Of a stretch of DNA of 64,000 nucleotides, positions 9,901 to 59,724 are shown piece after piece. The stretch's first letter is position 1; each line of letters begins with the position of its first letter. The position numbers were made by a program, and so were the translations under genes. The stretch lies in contig NC_083277.1 in assembly GCF_963506605.1 (NCBI RefSeq), positions 41,912,001 to 41,976,000 of the forward strand. The letters run 5' to 3'. Below the pieces are notes generated by a model. That model ran no database searches, was not told the DNA's origin, and saw only the letters and a program-made list of their open reading frames with translations. The stretch is from Zootoca vivipara (lineage: Eukaryota).

Positions 9901-12900
9901 AGGCGGCGACCCTCCCTTCCCTTTCTCTCTTCCTCTCTCTCGTTCTTATTCTTTCTTTCCCTCTCCTTCCTTCCTTCTTTATCTCTGTCTTCTCTCCCTC
10001 TTTCTTTTTCTTTCCTTCTTTATTCCTTCTTTCCTACTCTTCTTTCTCTCACCTCTTTCCTTCCTCTCTCCCTCCTGCTCCCTCTTTTCTTCCTTCCTTC
10101 CTTCCTTCCTTTCTTCCTTCCGTCCTTCCCAACTTTCTTCCTCTCCCTCATTCTTATTCTTTCTTTCCCTCTACTTCCTTCCTTCTTTCTCCCTTTCCGT
10201 CTTCTCTCCCTCTTTCTTTTTCTTTCCTTCTTTATTCTCTTCCTTATTTCCTANNNNNNNNNNNNNNNNNNNNNNNNNNNNNNNNNNNNNNNNNNNNNNN
10301 NNNNNNNNNNNNNNNNNNNNNNNNNNNNNNNNNNNNNNNNNNNNNNNNNNNNNNNNNNNNNNNNNNNNNNNNNNNNNNNNNNNNNNNNATAGGATGCTGC
10401 TTTATACTTCTGGCCCTTAAACCCTGGAACCAGGAGAGCAGCTCCAGTGAGTCAACCTCAGCCAGTCCCTTTGGTGAAGGGTGGTGGCTCACTGGCAGAA
10501 CATCTGTCCTGCATGCAGAAGGACCCCAGCATCTCCAGGTACTAGTAGCTCTGCAAAGGTCCTGCATGAAACCCTAGTGAGCCTCCACCACCCAGTGCAG
10601 TTACCAAAAATCATTTTTCAATAAATTGTACAATAATTGTACATTTGAATATCTACTTGCCATTATTCTGACTATGTTTCTGCTTTCAGAGCTAGTTATT
10701 ACTTACATTATTACAAAAAACAGTAATAATTGAATGCAGTGACAATAATTTATGATAATAAAGAGTGGACACATAGTCCTACAGATACAACCGGCCCTTT
10801 GAGGGTGACCAAACTGCTGATGCGGCCCCCGATGAATTTGAGTTTGACACCCCTGTCTTAGGCTCTTAAAATCTTAATTTTAATCCCACTGATTATATGC
10901 AGCAATGGCTTTTAAAATATTGTCATATATTGCATTTTATTATTTTATGCCCAGGAATGGCTTGTGTCTAGGTACAGCTTATTAGAACTATAAAGGTGTC
11001 TCTATTTGTAGCAATCTGGCTGAAGTTATTTATTCTACTCCATTGCCTTAAGGTACTCCAAGTGAGCCAGAGTTACATTATAGAAGAGTGTTTTAGTAAG
11101 AAGAGCAATTCTTTCCTTTAGCAGCAAACAGCCTTTAAAACTATAAAGTCGCCATTATAATAAGTCCTAAAAACAGGGCTGCTGATGAAGAATACTTGAA
11201 TGGGCAGAAACCAGTAAATATGCCAATGGGATGTCAAAGGCATAATACAGTCCAGAATTTGTGTTCCTTTCACTACCCTTTCATACACTTTTCAGAGTTA
11301 TTCAAACCTCATATGACCAAGATACGTTCTTCCTGTATCTTCTTACATTGTCTATCACCACTCTAGGTCAGTTGTTTTTAACCTTGAGAGAAATCTTTCC
11401 AAGTTGACTTGTCTACTGAGGTCAGAGGTCCTATGTGCCTTGTTGAAGATTCTGAAGCATATTTTAGGGATTGGCTCAGCCAGCTGGTCCTCACTGTTGC
11501 CCTGCCTAAACTGAAACTGAACCCGAGAAAACACTCAACGGCTATACACTGAAGAGTAGATCAGTTGCGCTGGGCATGTTTCAGGAACATTTGCCTGTCA
11601 TTCTGGCCTTCTCACGGAGAAGCCCCAGATAAGCTTCCACAGGAACCTTAGGGTTCTTCAGAATAAAGTATGAGAATCACTTTCATTGATCAGTAGCAAG
11701 CAAAGAACAAACAAGCAAAGTTCAAAGAGACGCATCGTCACTTGCTGCTTCATATCTGTGAATTCCTTTTCCTGGAGAGTCACTGAAGTCAGAACATTTT
11801 TTGAATCAGCGAGCAGAATAATTTAGTGTTTGGTCCTCATTTAGTTTGATATTTATCTTTTAGAATTTTCTTTTCTTTTTCAAAATTTCTTTTCTATTTT
11901 CCAAAATAGTACTTTTTAACTTAAAACTCGGAAAGATGGCAGGTTATATGCTTCAATAAAAAAATTAGCAAACTTAAACTAAACATAGGCCCAACTGAAA
12001 CAACAGAGATTCTTATTTTCAGAACCCCATATTATGCTTACCGTACAAGTAGGCTGGCCAGATTGTTCAGAAGCAACATGTAAGCCATTGTCTAGAGTGG
12101 TGACATGTGTCTCAGGAATATTATGCAGCACCTGAGCATAAGATGCAGTGCTTCCTCTTCTTGTAAAACTCCATAAAGCTGGCTAAAGAAAAGTTTATTG
12201 TCAAAAGCACAATTCATATAACAAGATAAATACACGAAGAGTCTTATAAAGACATCAGAGAAATGTGAAAAATTACTTGTATGAAATTTTATGTTGTTAC
12301 AGAAACCACCTGATGAAATGTGACCACCACCAAAAAAAAATCCCAGAGTTAATACAAAAAATAACTTCTGATCAGAAAGACGACACCATGGGATATGCAT
12401 ACATCAAATACCTGAATGGAGTTTTCAGTATTACATCACCAGTATCTAACTGACCTAACCAATTCCTTCCTATAAGGGTTCAACACACCAGAAAATCCAT
12501 TTTTGTTCAAAAGAAGCACTACAGAGAGATGGCTATGCAACTTTCCACTGACTGAGCTGAATGTAAAAGGTAAAGGTAAAGGGACCCCTGACCATTAGGT
12601 CCAGTCGTGACCGACTCTGGGGTTGCGCGCTCATCTCGCATTATTGGCCGAGGGAGCCGGCGTATAGCTTCCAGGTCATGTGGCCAGCATGACAAAGCCG
12701 CTTCTGGCAAACCAGAGCAGCACATGGAAACGCCGTTTACCTTCCCGCTATAGCGGTTCCTATTTATCTACTTGCATTTTGATGTGCTTTCGAACTGCTA
12801 GGTTGGCAGGAGCTGGGACCGAGCAACGGGAGCTCACCCCGTCACAGGGATTCGAACCGCTGACCTTCGGATCAGCAAGCCCTAGGCTCAGTGGTTTAGC

Positions 12901-15301
12901 CCACAGTGCCACCTGGGTCCACCTGAGCTGAATGTAGCACTCTCTTATTGCATTTTGTCTATAAGATCTGAAACATCCAATCTACAACACTGCAATAAAC
13001 ATTTATAAACAACTACCGGTATTTTAAATTTTTGTTGTTTAATCGTTTAGTGGTGTCCGACTCTTCGTGACCCCACGGACCAGAGCACGCCAGGCACTCC
13101 TGTCGTCCACTGCCTCCTGCAGCTTGGTCAAACTCATGTTGGTAGCTTCGAGAACTCTGTCCAACCATCTCGTCCTCTGTCGTCCCCTTCTCCTTGTGCC
13201 CTCAATCTTTCCCAACATAAGGGTCTTTTCCAGGGAGTCTTCTCTTCTCATGAGGTAGCCAAAGTATTGGAGCCCCAGCTTCAGGATCTGTCCTTCCAGT
13301 GAGCACTTAAAAAACCCAGTTACCGGTATTTCACCCAGCAATAAAGGAGAGTCCAAGGCACTCAAAGTCAATGGTCTAAGTAGTCACTAAAAGGTGCTGC
13401 TATTAAAGATATTGCCATTCGGCAGTAGCAGGTAAGTGGTATCTAAATTACAAAACTGAAAACGACAAAATATCCATCCTATCCCATTTATTGTTCTAAT
13501 GTATAAATCTCACCATAACCTACATCTTTCATAAATAGTACTGCCTCAGATTACTGCCCACCAGTTAGCTTAGCATGTGCATCTGTCAAAGTGTAATGAT
13601 GAGCCATTCTATGCCATGCCTCCCTAGACATTGCAATTGCAAGTGGAAGCAAGCATTTCGTAGACCCCAATGCCATCCATCCACAGAGGGGTGCCAAATA
13701 CATCAAAACTACCTGTTCAGGAGGATTTGCAGAAAAAAAAGCTTTACAATCATTGTAAAAAAAGTAAAGGGACCCCCTGACTATTAGGTCCAGTCATGAC
13801 CGACTCTGGGATTGCGCGCTCATCTCGCATTATTGGCCGAGGGAGCCGGCGTACAGCTTCCAGGTCATGTGGCCAGCATGACAAAGCCTATTAGCTAAAA
13901 AGAATGCCTTATGAAATCTTCCTTCCAGTACTGAAAACTACAGCTTTTAAAGTGAAAAATGAGGTGCAGAGGCTCCCCCAAATAAACTTGTGAATTGCTA
14001 CATTACATCTTTACAAATGCACTTGGGTAAATGCACAAATGAACACCACAAAGCATATAAATTACCTGTAGCAGAACATTAAACTTAAAAGTATTAAACT
14101 TGCCCCAAATACTAAATAAAAAAATTCCTTCAGTAGCACCTTAAAGACCAACTAAGTTTTTATTTTGGCATGAGCTTTCGTGTGCATGTACACTTCATCA
14201 GTGTATCTGATGAAGTGTGCATGCACACGAAAGCTCATACCAAAATAAAAATTTAGTTGGTCTTTAAGGTGCTACTGAAGGAATTTTTTTATTTTGTTTC
14301 GACTCAGACCAACACGGCTACCTACCTGTAACCCAAATACTAAGTCAAAATAACGCTTATCTTTCTAAATAGATTGATGACAGAGACAGCTCATTATTTA
14401 AATTCAATGTGATCATTTGGGAAACGTCTCTAACAATAAAAACATCCCCAAATTTCATTAAATGACCTGAACTCCTAATTCTATTACCCCATGAATCAAA
14501 TTTGATGTACACACATCAGAAGCTTATTTTGCAACACAAAAACAAAAAAGGAGATATTTTAAAATCTGCATAATGGTGGCAAGTTGGCAACTTCTGCCCA
14601 ATCTCACTTTAGCTCAACTATAAACTTAAGAGCTCTGGGACTACCACCACAAATGTTTCGGAAAACATGTTTCCTCCTGTTTTTTTGGACTGTGTTCCCA
14701 GAACGCTACCAAGCAAGATGTGGTCAGTACTTCACGCCTAAAAAGAACTGCACCGCTTGACTTCAGAAAGAAACCCTGCTCCTTCTTATGAAGTCTTAGA
14801 AAGGCTGCTCGGCGCGCAGGAAAAAAGACTCTGCATGTGCTCAGAGGCACGTTTTATTTTTCCCTCAAAGGACATGGCCAATGTGGGGATATGGGAGCGT
14901 AAGTGGCGATGCTGTCAAAATGAGCACCGCCCCAGCAACAGCAGCGGTATGTGTGGCGTGTGTGAAGGTTGGGTGTGTGTGTGTGTGCAACCCACTATAT
15001 CTGCAGAATGTCACGATTTGCGCTTCCATCGCCGGCAGCTCTCAGCCACTAGGCCTCGCCCGGCTGGTGAAATGGGCTGCCTGGACGGGCGCTGTGACCT
15101 TCGCGGGCGGCTTCCCCACAGGCTCCGCACACTCCCCGCTTCGTCCGCTCCCCGCTCTACCCACCACCGCCGCCCCTTCCTCCTTCTTTTCTACCCCGTC
15201 AGAGGCCCACCCGGTCAGGCACTCACCGGAGCGTGAGGACCCCGCAGAAGGGCCCGGCTGGCCACACAACCCGCTGCCCGGCACACAGAGGACGCCGCCA
15301 T
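838..15301 (-). CDS. UQCRC1: UQCRC1 gene span in window (coding exons 1-10, 1219 nt spliced; last exons lie left of the window)
   Basis: Ten GT-AG exons splice in frame: [11 protein letters not shown]...[12 protein letters not shown]...[24 protein letters not shown]...HATAYQGT...[14 protein letters not shown]...CRFTGSEIR...[16 protein letters not shown]...WMRLCTSVT. These are typical M16-family complex III core 1 motifs, and the gene is adjacent to SLC26A6. Confidence 0.97.
1370..1530 (-). CDS. UQCRC1: UQCRC1 exon 9
   Basis: [54 protein letters not shown] (161 nt). Confidence 0.95.
2606..2778. mobile_element. GC-rich hAT MITE (CAGGGCCG TIR)
   Basis: CAGGGCCGGCTCTAG...CTTAAGACGGCCCTG; imperfect 8-bp flanks. 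Confidence 0.7.
2824..2965. mobile_element. Palindromic hAT MITE (URR1-like)
   Basis: TIR CAGGCATCCCCAAACT; TSD GACTAGAG. Confidence 0.85.
3419..3562 (-). CDS. UQCRC1: UQCRC1 exon 8
   Basis: [48 protein letters not shown] (144 nt), donor gtaagt. Confidence 0.96.
4019..4134 (-). CDS. UQCRC1: UQCRC1 exon 7
   Basis: [38 protein letters not shown] (116 nt). Confidence 0.95.
4842..4921 (-). CDS. UQCRC1: UQCRC1 exon 6
   Basis: [26 protein letters not shown] (80 nt), cattag|...|gtcggt. Confidence 0.95.
5795..5993 (-). CDS. UQCRC1: UQCRC1 exon 5
   Basis: [31 protein letters not shown]...[19 protein letters not shown] (199 nt); overlaps ORF 5791..6081. Confidence 0.96.
7321..7469 (-). ncRNA. Candidate box H/ACA snoRNA in UQCRC1 intron 4
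   Basis: About 148 nt on the host strand: hairpin (AATTGCACTTCC/GGAAGCAATT lower stem, TGGCTT/AAGCCA apex), then H box ACATGA (7394-7399), second hairpin (CAGT/ACTG, CTTGG/CCAAG), then ACA+AAT at the 3' end. Confidence 0.5.
7603..7732 (-). CDS. UQCRC1: UQCRC1 exon 4
   Basis: [43 protein letters not shown] (130 nt), AG/GT flanks. Confidence 0.96.
8015..8363 (-). mobile_element. Sauria SINE, full length
   Basis: tRNA-like head, (ACCTTT)n tail, 14-bp TSD TTCTCCCTGCATGT. Confidence 0.9.
9238..9324 (-). CDS. UQCRC1: UQCRC1 exon 3
   Basis: tgtcag|...|gtgagg; [29 protein letters not shown] (87 nt). Confidence 0.96.
9696..10855. mobile_element. hAT-Charlie non-autonomous element containing a pyrimidine-rich tract and an assembly gap
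   Basis: TIR CA(C/G)GGGTGTCAAAC; 8-bp TSD TCTTAGGC. Confidence 0.8.
10254..10388. other. Assembly gap (N run)
   Basis: Run of n following CT-rich low-complexity sequence. Confidence 0.99.
12042..12182 (-). CDS. UQCRC1: UQCRC1 exon 2
   Basis: ttctttag|...|gtaagc; [47 protein letters not shown] (141 nt). Confidence 0.95.
12566..12922 (-). mobile_element. Sauria SINE, full length
   Basis: Near-identical to 8015-8363; 14-bp TSD CTGAGCTGAATGTA. Confidence 0.9.
13033..13307 (-). mobile_element. BovB 3' fragment
   Basis: Encodes [32 protein letters not shown]...SRTPLND, matching the end of the 43.4-44.8 kb copy. Confidence 0.92.
13762..13888 (-). mobile_element. Sauria SINE 3' fragment
   Basis: Matches the 3' third of the 8.0 and 12.6 kb copies. 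Confidence 0.85.
14116..14331. mobile_element. Penelope-like palindromic insertion carrying a minimal hammerhead ribozyme
   Basis: About 88-bp inverted arms, 12-bp TSD CCCAAATACTAA (14104-14115 / 14332-14343), shared tail cagaccaacacggctacctacctgtaac. Confidence 0.8.
14203..14240 (+). ncRNA. Minimal type I hammerhead ribozyme (PLE type)
   Basis: GTAT-CTGATGA-A-GTGTGCATGCACAC-GAAA-GC-TC-ATAC: stem I GTAT/ATAC, stem II palindrome, loopless stem III. Confidence 0.75.
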
Positions 15302-17291: not shown

Positions 17292-17330
17292 ACATGGGGT
17301 CACGAAGAGTCGGACACGACTAAACAACAA
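17292..17330 (+). mobile_element. BovB extreme 3' end
   Basis: catggggtcacgaagagtcggacacgactaaacaacaa. Confidence 0.75.
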
Positions 17331-17572
17331 GAAGACTAAACATTATCAAACTTTTTTTAAAAAAGGAAACAGTGGTGGATTCAGAAATAAAATATAAAAT
17401 AAAACAAAAACTGGACAGGAGATTTCTCAGAAAACCTATAGAGTTTACAGTAGACAGGAAATAGCCTTGACCAGTGTTGCAGCAGTTGGGGGCGTGTGTG
17501 TTAGCATAGTCACTTAAGTAATGCAAAAATTCCTTCAGTAGCACCTTAAAGACCAACTAAGTTTTTATTTTG

Positions 17573-17610
17573 GTATGAGCTTTCGTGTGCATGCACACTT
17601 CTTCAGATAC
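17573..17610 (-). ncRNA. Minimal type I hammerhead ribozyme (PLE type), inverted copy
   Basis: Exact reverse complement of 17636-17673. Confidence 0.75.
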
Positions 17611-17635
17611 AGTGAAATGGAACTTCCATTTCACT

Positions 17636-17673
17636 GTATCTGAAGAAGTGTGCATGCACACGAAAGCTCATAC
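17636..17673 (+). ncRNA. Minimal type I hammerhead ribozyme (PLE type)
   Basis: GTAT-CTGAAGA-A-GTGTGCATGCACAC-GAAA-GCTC-ATAC. Confidence 0.75.
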
Positions 17674-18269
17674 CAAAATAAAAACTTAGTTGGTCTTTGA
17701 GGTGCTACTGAAGGAATTTTTTTATTTTACTTCGATCCAGACCAACACGGCTACCTACCTGTAACCAGAACTTAAGTAATGCAGATGGAGTCCAGAGAGA
17801 AAAGAAATATTGACATCGCTTTACTGAAGAAAAAACAGGATAATTGAGCAAGGAACAGAGAGGTTTTGCCTTGCTTTACTTCAGGCCTTGTACAGAGCAG
17901 GGAGACATTCAGCTAAACATGAAGAGGAAAGCTCCTTCAGAACTACCCTACCAATTATGGCACGTGCTACCTCATCAAATATCATACCACTATGCATGGT
18001 TGCTAAGCAATACCTCCAACTGTCTGCCTCTTGGCTAGTTGACTTACCCTTAGACTGCACATGGAATGAGCTCTGCTGTTGCACTTTGCACAGGGGGTAG
18101 AGCTGGTGTTGTTGCTGCTTACTTGGACAGGGTAGGATAGGTGCTGGGGAGATCAAGGCTGCATGGGTGCACCGGTGAGAGAGCCAAATTGGTCCCAATG
18201 GGGCACCTCTGTAGCCTGAACCTCACCACCACCAGCCCTGTACAAGTTAGCATTTGTGTCACTGGTGTC

Positions 18270-33100: not shown

Positions 33101-36100
33101 CAGCAAGAAATGCACTGTGTTGTGTGGCACAGCAGTGTCAAAGCAGGGCCACGGCAGGCTAGAAGGTGAACCAGGCTTCCCCTTATTCCTATGGAGCTCT
33201 TCTTTTCTTCCTTACCAGGTCAATAACGTTGGATTTCCAAAGCATACGGATATCTCTAAACTGCTTGAACATTCCCTTCAGGTTGACAATGATGATGGAA
33301 GCTAAAATGGCCTGAGGAACAAGGAAATTTCGAAGATATAATAGAGAATCGGCAGTATCATAACACCCACAGCACAGAAAACAACAGAAAAGCCTCAGTT
33401 TAAAGAGACTTTTATCGCATAGTCATGAAGTCTTCAAAGGGAGATGTGACTGTTTAGTCTTGCACTTAAACGATAGTTTTCTTCAATATTCTATGTGCCT
33501 CTCTGCTGCTGTTGTCTTTCACAGGCTAGATACATATAAAGACACCCCCCTGCCCCAATAGTTAATCCCACCAACAGGTAAAATGAAACAAACAGTATAC
33601 ACCTGTGCATGTTTACACAGAAATAAGTCCTGTCGGGCTTACTCCCGCGTGTTTAGGATTGTAGGCAAAGACTGAGAGCACCAAGTTTGTTTAACGTACC
33701 TTGGGCAGCTGTTCAAAAAGTGCCCCAATCTTCAAGATGGTCACTAGGAGGATGAGACAGGAGACCAGGGCAGCCACCTGCAGAGGAGAGCATAGAGATG
33801 AATAAGTGCAAGGCTGGATGGAGTAGAAAAGGGCAAACAAAACAAAACAAAGCACACACACACACCCTCCCTTTCTTAAACTACTGATGACATTCCATTC
33901 GTTTTCCTTGTGAAAAGCCTAGAGCTCCTCCAGATTTATCGAAAATTCCTCCTGATTGGATTGCACAAAGCTTCTGTTTCAGTGTATCTGAAGAAGTGTG
34001 CATGCAGCGGTGGAGCTTCATGCTCTGCCACCGGGGGCGGAGAGCAGGCGTGCTGCCCCCAGGGACGTGGCACGCGTTCTGGGGGCGGGGCGTGCATTTT
34101 GGGGGCGGGACGTGCCGCGCACAGGGGCAAGGTGTGCGTTTTGGGGGCGGGTCAGGCAGCCGCGATGGTGCCCCTGGGATCGCGCCGCTTGGAGTGGCCC
34201 GCCCCCACCGCCCCTATCTTCCTACGCCCCTGTGTGCATGCACACAAAAGCTCATACCAATGACTAACTTAGTTGGTCTCTAAGGTGCTACTGGAAGGAA
34301 TTTTTATTTTATTTTCATAGAATCATAGAATCATAGAGTTGGAAGAGACCACAAGGGCCATCCAGCCGAACCCCCTGCCAAGCAGGAAAATACCATCAAA
34401 GCATTCCTGACAGATGGCTGTCAAGCCTCCGCTTAAAGACCTCCAAAGAAGGAGACTACACTCCTTGGCAGCAAGTTCCACTGTCAAACAGCTCTTACTG
34501 TCAGGAAGTTCTTCCTAATGTTTAGGTGGAATCTTCTTTCTTGTAGCTTGAATCCATTGCTCCGTGTCTGCTTCTCTGGAGCAGCAGAAAACAACCTTTT
34601 GCCCTCCTCTATATGACATCCTTTTATATATTTGAACATGGCTATCATATCACCCCTTAACCTTCTCTTCTCCAGGCTAAACATACCCAGCTCCCTAAGC
34701 CGTTCCTCATAGGGGACCTACGTCAGACCAACACAGCTACCTACCTGTAACTGACATGGAGGTTAGACAATGCCTGGTCTTTACTCAGCATTCATTTTGA
34801 TTTGCTTGCAGGGTGTTTATATCCTGTTCCCATGAATCATTCATCCAGTGCATTTCCCTCTTGCTTTTCCAATTTGGAAAAGCCTGCTTCTTCTTCTTTC
34901 TTTTTTAAAGGGGGGGGGGCTTTGTTGCACTGGAGTGAGAGAGCGCTTTAACCCACTTTAATTGTGCAAAGCCATGTTTTCCGGAAGGTGCTCAAACCCC
35001 TCCTGAAAAACACTTGACAGCCTGGAGGCACTTGCCTTGCCCTCAAACTGGGTACTGTTCCCTGTGAATGGATAGCCAAACCATCCTCAGCACATCAGGT
35101 CATTTGTGCCCTATGTTCTGTGAAAATAATGGCAGGGAAGGGGGGAGATTTGAACTAGGCATTTGATGAGAGAAGAGGGACGACAAATCCTAGTTACCTA
35201 ACTGTTCCATTAGCTCGAAGTGAGCTCTCTCTGCAACCCCAGGAATGAATAGAAATAACAAAGACTGTGAAAACACTAAATCATATACAGTATATGCAAC
35301 TGGAGGGAATGGAATACATAACACATATGCAATTGTCTCTGAAGAGGCGAATAAGACTCAAAAAGTGCCAAGTTCAATGTGCAAAAAGTCCAATGTAATA
35401 AGGTGCTAAGGTCTCTCAGGAACCGTTGAGGTTTGTGAGCGTTTTCAGCCTCGTTAAGTTTTAGTGTATGAACATGTTGGTGAGTAACTTTTAGATATTA
35501 TCATGTTTATGTACTTAAAAGTGATATGTAAATGCTTGCAGAGTGTATTGTAACTATTACCTAAGATGAAGTCCGTCCCTTGAAGAAACTGTACCAGTGA
35601 AACGGGGAGAACACAAGCTAGCCGCCCGTCAGAAGACAGACGAGGACGTCTGAGAGACCTTAGCACCGTATTACCGTGTTGTCTGTTGTTTGTCGCCTCT
35701 CTGCAACCTCGGCTCCAATGCTCATCAGCTCGATTTAGAAACTGCTGCCTGCTCCTACCAGAAAAAAGCCGACATCTTACATTGGGGACGTACCTGGCTG
35801 TTGCCTCCAGTGCTCTCCTGCACAAGGGAGCGGGACATGGAGCAGCTGATGCTGTAACATTGGAAAAAACTGCCCATGAAGTTACTGAGCCCCAAGGCTA
35901 TCAGCTCCTGCAAGAGACACACCATGGAGAAGGGCTGAGAGTCTGTCTGCATGGCTCTGTGGTCCAGTTTCCCATTACACAGGGCTTGACACTCATAAGC
36001 AGGGTCTCCAAACTAAGGCCCGGGGGCCGGATGCGGCCCAATCGCCTTCTAAATCCGGCCCACGGACGGTCCGGGAATCAGCATGTTTTTACATGAGTAG

Positions 36101-39100
36101 AATGTGTCCTTTTATTTAAACTGCATCTCTGGGTTATTTGTGGGGCCTGCCTGGTGTTTTTACATGAGTAGAATGTGTCCTTTTATTTAAAATGCATCTC
36201 TGGGTTATTTGTGGGGCATAGGAATTCGTTCATTTCCCCCCTTCCAAAATATAGTCCGGGCCACACAAGGTCTGAGGGACAGTGGACTGGTCCCCTGCTG
36301 GAAAAGGTTGCTGACCCCTGCTCATAAGGATTGACTAGGATGTTCCTATTGTGCAGCCTGCTCCTTTAAGGGGTTCTGGCCCAAAACCAGTTTAAAGATC
36401 AAGGACCAAACACAGGCCTTGAAGATGCCCGTCAACAGCACCTGGACAGGAGACTGAGCAGGCCCACAGGTCATGGGATATGCGGCATTTCTGTCCAAAA
36501 TTAATACAATCATTTCTAAGTGTGCATATAGTTTTAAGATCTGCAAATTTTATGCACACCTGCGGCCTGTTTGGTCTTTTCTTTGGTTTCCTCACTTTGG
36601 TGGTGCATAAACGGCCAACCTGGGACTGACAGGCAGAATATGTGAATGCTCCCCAAATTGAAGACCCACTTGTATCATAAGTACTCAACTATCCAACGGT
36701 AAATTAAAACAGATGATAAGACGGGGGAGGGAGCCCAACTTCATCCAGAAGGAAGCACCTACAGATCAATCCACATCTGACACAAAGAAAATGTGTCATG
36801 CAAATACAATAACAATATTATAGCACAACAGTAGTTTTCAAGCTTTTCGGACTTAGGCCTCACTTTCAACCCAAACATGCATTAGGAGACCCATTTCTTA
36901 ATCTTTTGCAATATATTTTCATGGTGGTATGTCTCCTGCTGCAGCCCACCTAGGATCAGGGCTGTGACCCATTAGTGCAGGCATCCCCAAACTTCGGCCC
37001 TCCAGATGTTTTGGACTACAATTCCCATCTTCCCCGACCACTGGTCCTGTTAGCTAGGGATCATGGGAGTTGTAGGCCAAAACATCTTGAGGGCCGCAGT
37101 TTGGGGATGCCTACATTAGCGGGTCCTAACCTGCCAGTTGAAGACCAGTGTAGTACAAGACAGACAGAAAAGCCGTAATAAATGAAGGTTTGTGTCTGAA
37201 GCAAGTAATGTAAGCAATAACGTAAGTCTGAAGTAAGTATAATGTAAGCAATGCAAGTAAGTAATGCAATAATCCTAGCCAACACAAAGGACGTCCAATG
37301 ATCCAATCGCTCAAAACCGCATTACTTCACCGGCTGAACTTATCAGTTGTGCTGACTCATACTGACTCAGCAGAATGCTGGTCGTAAATCAGTTTCAGCT
37401 TATTACCGTAGTCACGAATTCCTGATAATCATATCCTGAAAATGCAAGGTAAGCCACATGTGAAGCAACACCTGTGCTCAGCAAACCCTCAGGAAAAAGG
37501 TTCTCCTGAAGCGCTCTCACCACCGAGTCTCCACCGTTCTTCACAGCTCTGCAGTGTCCACTTCCTCCACCCATCTCCAGGAAATACATAAGGGAAGGAA
37601 GGGCAGAGGGGTGGGGCTTTCATTCCGATGGAGTGGGATGCGGGAGTGGGGGAAAAGTAGATAGCAAAGGCAGAGAACGTGAAGCAGCGATAGGGTAAAG
37701 GTGAAAGTAATGTGTTATGTACTGAGCTGAATCCTAGAACAATAGGATTCAGAATCAGCAGTCTGATTGGTCCGCAGGAGCTACCCAATCCAACTCCAGG
37801 TGGAAGTAAATCCGCAACCTGATTGGCCTGCAGGAGCAGCCAATCAGGCGGCTGGCAGAAGTGAATCTGCAACCTGATTGGCCTGTAGGAGCAGCCAATC
37901 AGGCTGCAGGCAGAAGTCAATCCACAACCTGATTGGCCCACAGGTGTAGCCATGAAGTAGCCAATCACGCAAGGCCCATTGTGTAAATAATGTATATAAG
38001 CAGATGGTTTTGGGAAAAGAGCCAGCCTTCTCTTCTTCTCCTTGATGACTATGAGCTGAATAAAGAGCATGAAATTCACTCTCGACTCCGAGTATATTTC
38101 ATAATGAAAACCAGGAAGCCAGATAATGGGCAGAGCCTCCTTACCTGGTTGCTGTCCACTTTGTAGCCATGCTTGAGAGCAAAGATCTTGCCGAGCGAGA
38201 TGGCGATGACGTAGCTAACCATCGCGATGGCAAAAGCATTTCCTACCACCTTCTCAAAATAGTCTGTTTTGGGGGCCACAGGGGGTCTCATCCTGCAATA
38301 AGGAAACACAGGCGCAGTGAGGCACTTCTGGTCCACAGGCAACACGTGGCAAGGTGAGTGAGGAAAAGCTTAATACCTCCCTGAGCAGTTCTTCTCTACC
38401 TGGAGATGGGTGTGGGTTGAGGGGGCAGGAAAGGGAGCTCAGTTTAGTTTCCTTGGGCCCAGGGGTGAGGAATCTCTGGGTCATGGGCCTAACAGGCCTC
38501 CCCCATCTAGCCCGAGAGGTCATTTTGGCCAAGCCACACCCTTGCATCTAATGTCATATATCTGGCGTCAGGAGTGGGGCAGGAAAAGGTTTCACTCAGC
38601 CAAATTGTGTTTTGCAGGTACAACTGATTGGTTGATTGGTAGTGCCTGCAAAGCCCATTGCATAGGGCTTCACAAGACCTGCCAATTGCCAGCTCTTGTG
38701 CAGCCCCTTCCAAAGCACTTTGAGGCCCGTGTCTGTGCCTGCATGGTTTGATTTCAAACTATGCGAGCCAAAATGGGTAATAACAGGTTTTTTGCAAGCT
38801 CTCAGACCCAGCTAAATTAACCAGTGCACAATATGATCAAGTGAAAGTGTGGATGAACCCCTATTATACATTTTCACCACGAGGTCCCGGAGTGGGTTAC
38901 AAAATTAATATCCTCTTCAAACAAACAAGAAAGCCAACAAATATTTAAAACGACAGCACCATAAATTACAGTAGAATCATAGAATCATAGAGTTGGAAGA
39001 GACCACGAGGACCATCCAGTCCAACCCCCTGCCAAGCAGGAAACACCATCAAAGCCTTCTTGACATATGCCTGTCAAGCCTCTGCTTAAAGACCTCCAAA

Positions 39101-39898
39101 GAAGGAGACTCCACCACACTCCTTGGCAGCAAATTCCACTGCCGAACAGGTCTTACTGTCAGGAAGTTCTTCCTAATGTTTAGGTGGAATCTAAAAAATA
39201 GTAGGTCTAAAAAATATTTTCCAGCTGTCAAAGGCCAGGGAAAACAGGTGCACCTTTAACGATCGATTGTAGCTATAAAATGAAGATGCATCTCTCTGTC
39301 AGGAGGGACTCCAAATTCCCTCTCCCAGGACACCACCACCTGAATTTCTGAATACAGCAGAGCTAGCAAGAGAGCTTCATCTCCGCATCAACACATGGGA
39401 GGAGAAAATTGCATGTCCTAAGGTGGTTATGGGAAGCAGCTGGAGTCACTCACCCGCTGGGGATTACACCCACGATGCTAATCTCAAACTTTTCGTTCAG
39501 GTTGGCAAAGTAGGAGATCACTGTGGATATAATAATCTGAAAACAGGTGGCAGGGTGAGAGGAAGGACTTGGCCACATCTGAGCATCGTTTATAAGTTCA
39601 TCCACTCCCCCCCCCCATTCAAATTAGATCAGAGTAGTCCACACTCACATACATTTGAATTCGAGTTAAAAGGATCAACTTTGATCTTTCTCATTCATGC
39701 CAGTAGGCATTCCCTTTTGTGTTTGCCCTTGATTTGTTGATTCTATTATGCCTAGTAGGGACCAACAGGACATTTCTGCAGGTAGCTGTGTGCATGCCTT
39801 TAAAAAAATCCCCACCCAATAAGTGTAAAATCACAGTTGGGCAGTGGTAAATTTGCCTGTGTATTTTTCAGAGTTTGGGCAAATGTGAGGAATCAGAA

Positions 39899-41033: not shown

Positions 41034-44000
41034 CTTATTTATACCCTGCCCATCTGGCTGGGTTTCCCCAGCCACTCTGGGCGGCTTCCAACAAAATATT
41101 AAAATACAATGGTCTGTTAAACATTAAAAGCTTTTCTAAACAGGGTTTAAATTCCATTCGTTTTTCTGGAGAGTTCTAAGGATTATTTAATAGCTACTAC
41201 ATTGTTGTTTGTTGCTAACTTACTGTTTGTGAGCCCAGGGACAGGGTAGAAATCCTAGAAATACGGAGAATAAATTACCGTGAGAAGCTCGATGGGGATT
41301 GGGATCAGAAGCCTCTTGCCAATTTTGTCATTGAGCAGCTTCACAAGCAGGATCGAAACCATGGCGATCACAGAAGTGACCAAGGTGCCCACGTTGGTAT
41401 TTGGCAATTTTGAGCAAACTTCTAAAAAGGTCTGTAGGGGAGGCACAAAGCAGGGGAAGTAATTGTGAGAGAATGAGCGGGGAGGAAATGTGAGAGGAGC
41501 AACCAGAGACCCTAATGCAGTGTAATGTTCGCTGCACTCACTTAACCTAAACTTGGGGACAAATATGTGTAAATAAACCATATTTCTTAAAGATACCACC
41601 ATTTCTGCTGTGCTTCAAACCATGACCGCTGGAATTTTGCTAATGCTCAGTGGTGATTGGGGTGGCTGGTCACACTATGGTTTGTGAATGATGCTCCTTT
41701 GATACAGACATGCTGATCTCTTTTATTGTGGCTTCCATTTTCAATGCTGCTTTCTTGGTTTGTCCTCCTTAGATTTCAATTGATTTGAATGTTTGTTTAT
41801 TGTTTAGATCCCATCTTTAAATAATTAAAAAGAAAATATTGCAAGGAAAAGCCACCAAGCAACAGCAATAAAAAGAGCCATGCCCACGATCAGTGGCAGT
41901 TATTCCTCGTAGCGTGGCATGCATAAAAGCCAACAGACGAACAGTTTTAGTACAGTATTCTAAAATCTTTTATATGCCTCCCTCCTGTGGGTCCATTGGG
42001 GAGGAAAGGAGGAGTATTAAAGGACTGCAGACAAAAGAAGACAAAGGATCCGACCCTTGTTGCTTAAAGTGAAGTGATTCTCCTCAATCCCCAATTGATC
42101 TTTGCTGTAAATTACGTTTCCATGAGACTTTCTCTACTGTGGCCACACTTTGCAACCATGGACAGTGGCAATGTCCTGACAGTGTCAACATTCCAGAGGA
42201 GAAAATAGGAATGTTTCATGTTTCACCCCCATTCCCGTATCAAGGCCTTGTCCACACCTCACCTCTCTACTCCCACTCCCCCCCCCCCAGGAAAACCTGT
42301 GGTTTACTACTGAACCAGACCAACCCACAGATTGCCATTTGTTTCGATTCAGTGGTAAAGATCATGTTCCTCAGGGGAAAGCTGTGGGGAAAAGCAAAAC
42401 TGCTCAGACCTGTGCCAAGGAACCTCAGAACAAGCGGAAAATTGCTTGGACCTGAACTTTCTGGGCATGGTCGTACCCAGGATCAAAACTGGGGGGGCAA
42501 GGGGAGGGGCCAAGGCACGGAAGGGGAGGGGCCACAAAGTGGGCGGGAACGGCGAACTCGCGCTCCGCCGGGCTGTGCCCCTCCCTAGAAGCAGGGCTGG
42601 TGGGCGGAGGCGGAGCCCAGCCCAGCGGAGCGCGAGTTCAGCGTTCCCGCCCGCCGCGCCGCGCTCTCTGGTTCCCCGCCGTGCTTGGCCTTGCCAGAGG
42701 GCGCGACGGGGAGCTGGAGGGAGGGCGCAGCGCGGCGGGTGGGAAGGGCGAACTCGCGCTCCGCCGGGCTGTGCCCCTCCCTAGAAGCAGGGCTGGTGGG
42801 CGGAGGCGGAGCCCAGCCCAGCGGAGTGCGAGTTCGGCGTTCCCGCCCGCCGCGCTCCCTGGTTCCCCGCCGCGCTTGGCCTTGCCTGAGGGTGCGCTGG
42901 GGAGCTGGGGGGAGGGTGCGGTGCGGCGCGGCATGGCAGGAATGGCGAACTTGCGCTCCGCCGGGCTGTGCTCCGCCTCTGCCCACCAGCCCTGCTTCTA
43001 GAGTAGGGCAGCTGCCCTAACTTGCCCCGTGGTGGGTACGCCCTTGTTTCTGGGTGCGGGACCAGCAGAATTGTGGAGGAGCCCTCTCTGCCGGACCCCT
43101 CTCTGACCTTCCTTGGTTCTTCTCTGACTGTTGTATTCATTTTCTTGGAAATAGGCTGCCCTGCCCTGACTATGGAAGCTAAGATATTTATTAGTAGGCA
43201 GACCACAACAGCTTCCTTCCTTCAAAGCTTAAGAATTTTTAATCTGACAGACAGTGTAAGTGTGCTTTTTATAGAACCACTGCGCCACAAATATCTTCAG
43301 AAACATTTACAGTCTTTATAGGGAGTTATGGGGAGCTAATAACAAGCACTGCTAATAACAAGGCCAGTGGAAGTGATGATATTCCAGCTGAACTATTTAA
43401 AATTTTAAAAGATGATGCTGTTAAGGTGCTACACCCAATATGCCAGCAAGTTTGGAAAACTCAGCAATGGCCAGAGGATTGGAGAAGATCAGTCTACATC
43501 CCAATTCCAAAGAAGGGCAGTGCCAAAGAATGCTCCAACTACCGCACAATTGCGCTCATTTCACACGCTAGCAAGGTTATGCTTAAAATTCTACAAGGCA
43601 GGCTTAGGCAGTATGTGGACCGAGAACTCCCAGAAGTGCAAGCTGGATTTCGAAAGGGCAGAGGAACCAGAGACCAAATAGCAAACATGCGCTGGATTAT
43701 GGAGAAAGCTAGAGAGTTCCAGAAAAACGTCTACTTCTGCTTCATTGACTATGCAAAAGCCTTCGACTGTGTCGACCACAGCAAACTATGGCAAGTTCTT
43801 AAAGAAATGGGAGTGCCTGATCACCTCATCTGTCTCCTGAGAAATCTCTATGTGGGACAAGAAGCTACAGTTAGAACTGGATATGGAACAACTGATTGGT
43901 TCAAAATTGGGAAAGGAGTACGACAAGGTTGTATATTGTCTCCCTGCTTATTTAACGTATATGCAGAATTCATCATGCGAAAGGCTGGACTAGATGAATC

Positions 44001-59503: not shown

Positions 59504-59724
59504 AATAGTTACAGGTAGGTAGCCGTGTTGGTCTGCCGTCAAAACAAAATAAAAATAAAATAGAAAAATTCATTCCAGGAGCACATTAGAGACCAAATAA
59601 GTTTGTCATTGGTATGAACTTTTGAGAAGTGTGCATGCACATGAAAGCTCATACCAATGACAAACTTACGGTAGTTGGTCTCTAAAGTGCTACTGGAATG
59701 AATTTTTCTATTTTATTTTTATTT
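59504..59724 (-). mobile_element. Penelope-like palindromic copy, degenerate
   Basis: Reverse-oriented tail gttacaggtaggtagccgtgttggtctg, inverted arms, TSD CCTTTGAAT (59495-59503 / 59725-59733). Confidence 0.75.

Follow-up and report, generated by a model that had tools for sequence, protein, structure and literature searches.

The insertion upstream of UQCRC1

The stretch of Zootoca vivipara DNA analysed here, 64,000 nucleotides of contig NC_083277.1 (positions 41,912,001 to 41,976,000; hereafter the window, with coordinates counted from its first base), carries the gene UQCRC1 on its minus strand. The exons of UQCRC1 match core protein 1 in the Protein Data Bank (PDB), and its ATG lies near 15301. 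About 2.2 kb upstream of this start codon, at 17526-17769, lies a 244-bp insertion that contains no open reading frame (ORF), is folded back on itself, and bears a minimal hammerhead motif on each strand. The insertion is very probably one recent, dead-on-arrival copy of a very abundant, ORF-less Penelope-like element (PLE), a type of retroelement, and its palindrome a by-product of integration.

Direct comparison of the two arms, 17526-17622 and 17624-17720, shows complementarity at 96 of 97 positions with a single central base between them, and a repeat scan extends the pair to 17520-17622 and 17624-17726 (103 nt, 97% complementary, 1 nt apart). The sole mismatch within the 97 positions is G17699, where the majority of the family has A. 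An exact 14-bp direct repeat on either side forms the target-site duplication (TSD). An earlier, sequence-only reading of this DNA had described a near-perfect palindrome with a 1-nt spacer at 17623, flanked by a 14-bp TSD and situated some 2.2 kb from the UQCRC1 start, and it is borne out on each count. The overall structure, however, is asymmetric, as a tail of approximately 40 nt (~17727-17765, ending in CCAGACCAACACGGCTACCTACCTGTAAC) extends the right arm, with nothing corresponding to it on the left. The family ends at 17765 (CTGTAAC), and the bases CAGA at 17766-17769 are extra junction bases that precede the TSD. The features of the insertion are as follows.

17512..17525, no strand: left TSD, ACTTAAGTAATGCA, an exact 14-nt match to 17770-17783
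17526..17622, minus strand: inverted, tail-less arm that ends in the T-rich stretch GGAATTTTT; 96/97 complementarity, and an nhmmer match at 17601-17518 on the minus strand
17573..17610, minus strand: minimal hammerhead motif, found by exact pattern and descriptor match; predicted cut after the C opposite G17577
17623, no strand: central base C between the arms, with which the forward arm may begin, as the forward-only copy at 33972-34751 aligns to that arm from 17623
17624..17726, plus strand: forward arm, from the body through the T-rich stretch, beginning about 12 nt upstream of the usual 5' boundary of the family (~17635)
17636..17673, plus strand: type I minimal hammerhead motif, found by exact pattern match, descriptor match and the published minimal consensus (PMC4209133)
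17727..17765, plus strand: AC-rich tail, in the forward arm only, ending in the family-wide 3' terminus CCTACCTGTAAC; loose contig ends cluster at 17765-17772
17766..17769, no strand: four extra bases, CAGA, between the 3' end of the element and the TSD; the older copy at 59508-59718 also has four extra bases there
17770..17783, no strand: right TSD, an exact repeat of the left one

The arms differ by 1% from each other, versus at least 5% from any other copy (the nearest is 94.7% identical). Both arms carry the minority variants of this insertion, and one TSD encloses them. Since the arms are each other's closest relatives and lie within a single TSD, they arose in a single event.

A minimal hammerhead motif in each arm

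Each arm reads GTAT-CTGAAGA-A-GTGTGCATGCACAC-GAAA-GC-TC-ATAC on its own strand, or GUAU-CUGAAGA-A-GUGUGCAUGCACAC-GAAA-GC-UC-AUAC as RNA. On the plus strand, stem I is a 4-bp helix of 17636-39 paired with 17670-73, and the conserved core is present, with C3-A9 at 17640-17646 (CUGAAGA) and G12-A14 at 17662-17664 (GAA). A17647 is the unpaired base between A9 and G10.1. Helix II occupies 17648-61 (5 bp plus the loop CAUG), and within it G17648 (G10.1) pairs with C17661 (C11.1). Helix III is reduced to a loopless palindromic AGCU (A15.1-G15.2-C16.2-U16.1, 17665-68). According to standard hammerhead numbering, C17669 occupies position 17, and the predicted cut falls between 17669 and 17670; the cut after C17669 that the sequence-only reading had forecast follows from this numbering, as a position only.

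The window was searched with a descriptor comprising CUGANGA, an optional bulge, at least 4 bp in helix II, GAAA, Watson-Crick pairing of 15.2 with 16.2, U16.1, H17, and at least 3 bp in stem I. Three matches were found in the 64 kb (both arms of the insertion and 14207-14240), and none in 200 dinucleotide-preserving shuffles. The claim of a hammerhead motif with a loopless stem III in each arm thus stands, both by exact pattern on the two strands and by the descriptor.

The minimal hammerhead ribozyme (min-HHR) of PLE pseudo-long terminal repeats (pseudo-LTRs) was defined by Cervera & De la Pena 2014 (PMC4209133). Its hallmarks are an additional base that separates position 9 from position 10.1, conserved pairing of G10.1 with C11.1, and a long helix II with a short helix I, together with a palindromic 15.2-16.2 pair that yields a helix III only in a dimer (PMC4209133). 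These motifs, which are present in reptiles too, number thousands per genome and are dispersed and mostly single, with some paired nearby on opposite strands; their in vitro activity is very low (PMC4209133). A review presents the same picture and cites Lunse, Weinberg & Breaker 2017 for cleavage as dimers (PMC6765202). The motif at 17636-17673 shares with the min-HHR of PLEs its type I topology, the CUGANGA and GAAA boxes, the 9/10.1 bulge, the G10.1-C11.1 pair, the loopless 15.2/16.2 palindrome (AGCU here), the long helix II and the 4-bp helix I, and the proposal that it is a minimal type I hammerhead of the PLE kind therefore agrees with the published hallmarks. The opposite-strand dual motif is likewise an already published min-HHR arrangement (PMC4209133). 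A full-text search of papers did not find the present hammerhead sequence with its fully palindromic 14-nt helix II, and a 27-nt exact pattern from the hammerhead and a 26-nt one from the tail had no match in metagenome, viral and prokaryote-genome collections.

Related copies within the window

Through BLAST and nhmmer, four insertions of the family were located in the window, the number that had been claimed for it.

17526-17769: fold-back copy upstream of UQCRC1; junction of the arms ~17 nt upstream of the core, with a 1-nt spacer; TSD of 14 bp; arms 96/97; both hammerheads intact
14113-14333, plus strand: fold-back copy in UQCRC1 intron 1; TSD of 12 bp, CCCAAATACTAA; arms 85/89; junction CTTCATCAG-TGTAT-CTGATGAAG, about 12 nt nearer the core than that of the copy above
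59508-59718, minus strand: fold-back copy of an older, diverged subfamily; TSD of 9 bp, CCTTTGAAT; arms not reliably aligned
33972-34751, plus strand: forward-only, interrupted copy; no TSD identified; G12 mutated to A

The intronic copy retains an intact forward hammerhead with U at position 7, and its inverted arm is altered in helix II and stem I. A single core difference separates it from the insertion upstream of UQCRC1, at the free position N7 (A in the upstream insertion, U in the intronic copy). In the older copy, the forward arm (on the minus strand) begins at A13 and the inverted arm at ~G5, and both hammerheads are incomplete through a C11.1U change and truncations. Helix II of the forward-only copy is split by a 225-bp, very GC-rich insertion (34007-34231) flanked by an 11-bp duplication, GTGTGCATGCA; no second copy of this nested sequence occurs within the window. 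An independent dispersed repeat, which starts ATAGAATCATAGAATCATAGAGTTGGAAGAGACC, is present at 34315-34723, 38972-39192 and 47434-47615 (three copies, 91-93% identity), and one repeat copy of this type sits between the body and the tail of the forward-only copy.

Of the seven arms that the window contains, four (the forward-only copy, both arms of the older copy, and the inverted arm of the intronic copy) have lost positions of the core or stems. This matches the expectation of neutral decay, and there is no selection on inserted copies; the young copies have intact hammerheads because they are young. The core conservation that had been expected among copies accordingly holds for the young ones and fails for the older ones, in which conserved bases of the core and stems have changed. 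In each of the three fold-back copies, the tail is confined to the forward arm, and the inverted arm always ends in the T-rich stretch just before the tail. The TSDs of these three copies are 14, 12 and 9 bp in length.

The family in genomic reads

Contigs of one genomic run (X1) were aligned on 17300-18000 at a likeness of at least 80%, and 23,571 of them matched. Summed depth over the element is 2-3.5 million versus 23 over the unique flanks, or roughly 10^5 times single-copy depth, a ratio that is not a strict copy number. The family is thus very large, very abundant and non-coding, as the sequence-only reading had supposed. Its boundaries are sharp at 17525/6 and at 17765-17772. At the centre of the palindrome the depth dips, such that only ~11-17% of the arm depth reaches 17612-17635, and the contigs contain over 300 different joints that link a left-arm to a right-arm coordinate. 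Both the depth profile and the joints place a common 5' boundary at ~17635. Beyond the end of the inverted arm, the family-wide sequence is A-rich and then random, unlike the tail's reverse complement; the one-sided tail is therefore a family-wide rule.

Longer copies extend upstream of 17622, and their consensus contains TATATATAA about 20 nt upstream of that position (agreement 0.7). At ~17635, about 32 nt past this TATA sequence, lie many of the joints and loose ends. As a lead, this suggests that the common unit of ~130 nt corresponds to a pseudo-LTR transcript running from the promoter to the region where reverse transcription starts.

Probable relationship to Penelope-like elements

Insertions of PLEs characteristically show strong 5' truncation, an inverted 5'-truncated copy that abuts the forward copy, a tail of 30-40 bp at one end, and a TSD (PMC8557442; Evgen'ev & Arkhipova 2005). 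That PLEs often insert with inverted 5' ends, as the sequence-only reading had stated, is a standard feature of the group (PMC8557442). The same footprint is found here: a TSD of variable length, an inverted 5'-truncated partner with variable breakpoints, and a one-ended tail of ~39 nt. Unlike typical PLE insertions, the 244-bp insertion has no ORF and no direct pseudo-LTR pair, and consists of just a 3'-terminal pseudo-LTR piece. Earlier publications already describe the minimal hammerheads of PLEs and their need for a dimer, as well as the inverted 5' copies and the one-sided tail.

The SINE-like (short interspersed element-like) short hammerhead elements Sm-alpha and Sj-alpha of schistosomes are, together with animal non-LTR retrozymes, thought to be mobilised by PLEs. 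Both groups resemble the insertion in being short, non-autonomous carriers of hammerheads. Retrozymes, however, are tandem same-sense repeats that yield circular RNAs, and the schistosome elements are SINE-like with RNA polymerase III transcription, whereas the insertion belongs to units that are single and dispersed, and it has an inverted partner.

Among the closest known systems is a lizard PLE, Poseidon_Ac (PAc) of Anolis carolinensis, in which reverse transcription starts from two internal positions on either side of an AC-rich tail, the AC-rich site being used for initiation (PMC11167929). Purified PAc protein cleaves and extends both target strands in vitro, and RNA-seq of PAc shows no RNA ends at the hammerhead cut site (PMC11167929). 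The Poseidon_Ac hammerhead, CUGAGGA-U-helix II-GAAA-CG-UC, has the same architecture as the motif described here and an unrelated sequence (PMC11167929 supplement). The PAc ORF begins in helix II, whereas the helix-II ATG of the present insertion meets a stop after 11 codons. Since its ORF layout is unlike that of Poseidon_Ac, the family would probably belong to another PLE clade.

Origin of the palindrome

These data show an insertion of the retro type: the target was cut with a stagger (TSD of 9-14 bp), the extent of 5' truncation varies, the inverted partner arose in the same event, and the tail is one-sided. The junction coordinate differs in each of the three fold-back copies, and the fourth copy is forward only. 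Given such variable junctions, each palindrome was built during integration without any palindromic master, and what moves is a forward RNA of ~130-145 nt and not a palindrome. The "mobile palindrome" of the sequence-only reading has therefore to be abandoned, in view of junctions that differ in every copy, the more than 300 joints among contigs, and the non-palindromic copy at 33972-34751.

The mobile RNA would be a piece of PLE pseudo-LTR that extends approximately from the transcription start, via the minimal hammerhead, to the AC-rich region in which reverse transcription starts (the tail). The PLE machinery would nick the target with a 14-bp stagger, giving rise to the TSD, and make complementary DNA (cDNA). 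A second, inverted and tail-less copy would then be produced head-to-head with the forward one, as is usual for PLEs, and with such a partner the presence of a hammerhead on each strand is automatic. In master elements the hammerhead would be retained, with a presumed role in processing tandem PLE transcripts as a dimer.

How the inverted partner is made can be proposed only tentatively. In a two-ended integration, which we regard as possible though on balance doubtful, both nicked strands would prime reverse transcription from different start sites. One nick would prime 3' of the tail and give the forward arm with its tail, while the other would prime in the U-rich stretch 5' of the tail and give the inverted arm without one. 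The two cDNAs would be joined by an end-to-end template jump, which would account for both the 1-nt spacer and the one-sided tail. A snap-back hairpin was judged less likely for the insertion upstream of UQCRC1, in which complementarity of the arms runs to the last base across a gap of 1 nt. Self-priming by a hairpin takes a loop several bases long, and an end-to-end jump between two cDNAs that had both reached one RNA 5' end therefore fits this copy better. For copies with offsets of 5-20 nt, a single-cDNA fold-back is possible.

The link to PLEs draws on the architecture of the motif and the footprint of the insertion, by which a connection to a master encoding reverse transcriptase (RT) and a GIY-YIG domain is presumed. 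Several observations weigh against this assignment or parts of it. No autonomous element with RT and GIY-YIG and this pseudo-LTR was found within the window. Its only RT ORF, at 43426-44817 on the plus strand (463 aa), is LINE-like (resembling long interspersed elements; Pfam RVT_1, E 4e-41). With LINE-1 ORF2 and R2 as its best PDB matches, this ORF was rejected as a Penelope master and is a LINE fragment by its closest solved structures. The ORFs neighbouring it, and those upstream of the copy at 33972-34751, had no Pfam matches. No sequence similarity was found to Poseidon_Ac, the sole lizard PLE compared, and its consensus contains neither the tail nor the hammerhead strings. The Rfam hammerhead models (Hammerhead_1, _3, _II, HH9 and HH10) gave no match in the whole window at the gathering score, or in 17450-17850 at E<=10. 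This silence is expected because the models require a closed helix III, and it leaves the motif without independent model-based confirmation. As for dual priming, the near-equal lengths of the arms could equally stem from a single cDNA that folded back.

Folding, transcripts and alternative readings

Because the two motifs lie on opposite strands, any transcript that spans the insertion carries one ribozyme and one antisense copy, as had been pointed out from the sequence. Such a read-through RNA is predicted to form a perfect hairpin of ~97 bp, at -173 kcal/mol for the plus strand and -175 kcal/mol for the minus strand, and forcing stems I and II of the right-arm hammerhead is predicted to cost ~69 kcal/mol. 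The ribozyme would thus be caged in the long hairpin if it were transcribed. The claim of two intact ribozymes therefore stands as far as their sequence goes and falters on the predicted hairpin, which would sequester them.

These predicted hairpins on both strands lend themselves to a different reading, in which the locus is a functional source of hairpin RNA whose long double-stranded RNA (dsRNA) enters ADAR, endogenous small interfering RNA or microRNA pathways and might regulate UQCRC1 or silence the Penelope family. Variant places in family RNA point the same way: A>G and T>C places outnumber C>T and G>A places by 30 to 13 and 36 to 19 in the two RNA-seq runs, versus 16 to 27 in genomic contigs (Fisher p 0.005 and 0.008), although this is not a like-for-like comparison, as raw reads are set against contigs and the copy subsets differ. 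The excess is a family-level one, and offers a hint compatible with adenosine-to-inosine (A-to-I) editing of fold-back copies in transcripts. Sub-threshold Rfam matches to plant and animal microRNA precursors were also obtained, but these lie far below gathering and merely reflect the long hairpin. Against such a function, RNA depth is zero over the unique flanks of the locus in both raw-read runs. About 90% of family RNA reads run into unlike sequence, and therefore stem from other loci. Nothing ties the insertion to the regulation of UQCRC1, and we regard a functional hairpin locus as improbable. The self-silencing hairpin, the ADAR or siRNA substrate and the DNA cruciform that the sequence-only reading had suggested thus find no support at this locus.

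More improbable still is a retrozyme-like unit, the hammerheads of which would self-cleave the transcript, setting free a small RNA, linear or circular, able to propagate. The idea has a precedent in animal non-LTR retrozymes, which derive from PLE pseudo-LTRs and bear type I hammerheads (bioRxiv 10.64898/2026.07.22.740005). A retrozyme, however, needs tandem same-sense hammerheads, and here the motifs are on opposite strands with no direct tandem. As no transcript contains two same-sense motifs, the dimer required for helix III would need to be intermolecular. That dimer is predicted to be weak, the canonical double hammerhead reaching -12.7 kcal/mol versus -15.2 when the two monomers stay free and -32.2 when a 14-bp helix-II duplex holds the dimer. 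A dimer with both an intermolecular helix II and an intermolecular helix III was rejected on geometric reasoning, as coaxially stacked helices cannot close an 18-bp ring. In the two RNA-seq runs there was no site at which many RNA molecules begin or end, 17669/17670 included. The core is contiguous with the sequence 3' of C17 in all four window copies, which were therefore templated by uncleaved RNA.

Least probable of all is a miniature inverted-repeat transposable element (MITE) or other DNA transposon with terminal inverted repeats, or else two independent head-to-head insertions, with a fortuitous hammerhead-like motif. MITEs, too, can show inverted symmetry over long termini and direct repeats at their flanks. 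Here, however, the TSD varies in length, the termini are asymmetric, with the tail at just one of them, and the inverted part, which one copy lacks, differs in extent from copy to copy. The two arms carry the same minority variants of this insertion, with a single mismatch in 97 positions and one TSD around both, and the descriptor had no match among the shuffles. The assignment to a terminal-inverted-repeat DNA transposon, which the sequence-only reading had named as one outcome that would overturn it, was thus not borne out, the TSD being variable, the tail one-sided and one copy non-inverted.

Other features of the window

The segment 17300-17347, to the left of the insertion, is the end of another extremely abundant repeat, with a summed contig depth of ~0.2-0.9 million versus 23 in unique sequence; matches of 31-33 nt to it occur at 44779-44811, 13045-13075 and 47009-47039. 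A marginal tRNA-like Rfam match at 52806-52876 on the plus strand (29.5 bits versus a gathering score of 29) is probably the head of a tRNA-derived SINE or a pseudogene. A run of 135 N at 10254-10388, either an assembly gap or masked sequence, lies in a low-complexity region.

Implications for Penelope-like elements

With arms complementary at 96 of 97 positions, a 1-nt spacer, an exact TSD and a one-sided tail, the insertion upstream of UQCRC1 is a clean young specimen that constrains how PLEs build their inverted copies, because hairpin snap-back cannot easily yield a 1-nt loop. Junctions of this kind, surveyed across the genome, could serve as a test of what was found in vitro, namely extension of both target strands from two RT start sites. 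If two-ended integration is true, it would give a lizard genome with thousands of near-perfect palindromes of 100-200 bp, and such palindromes, where they lie within transcripts, would become A-to-I-edited dsRNA.

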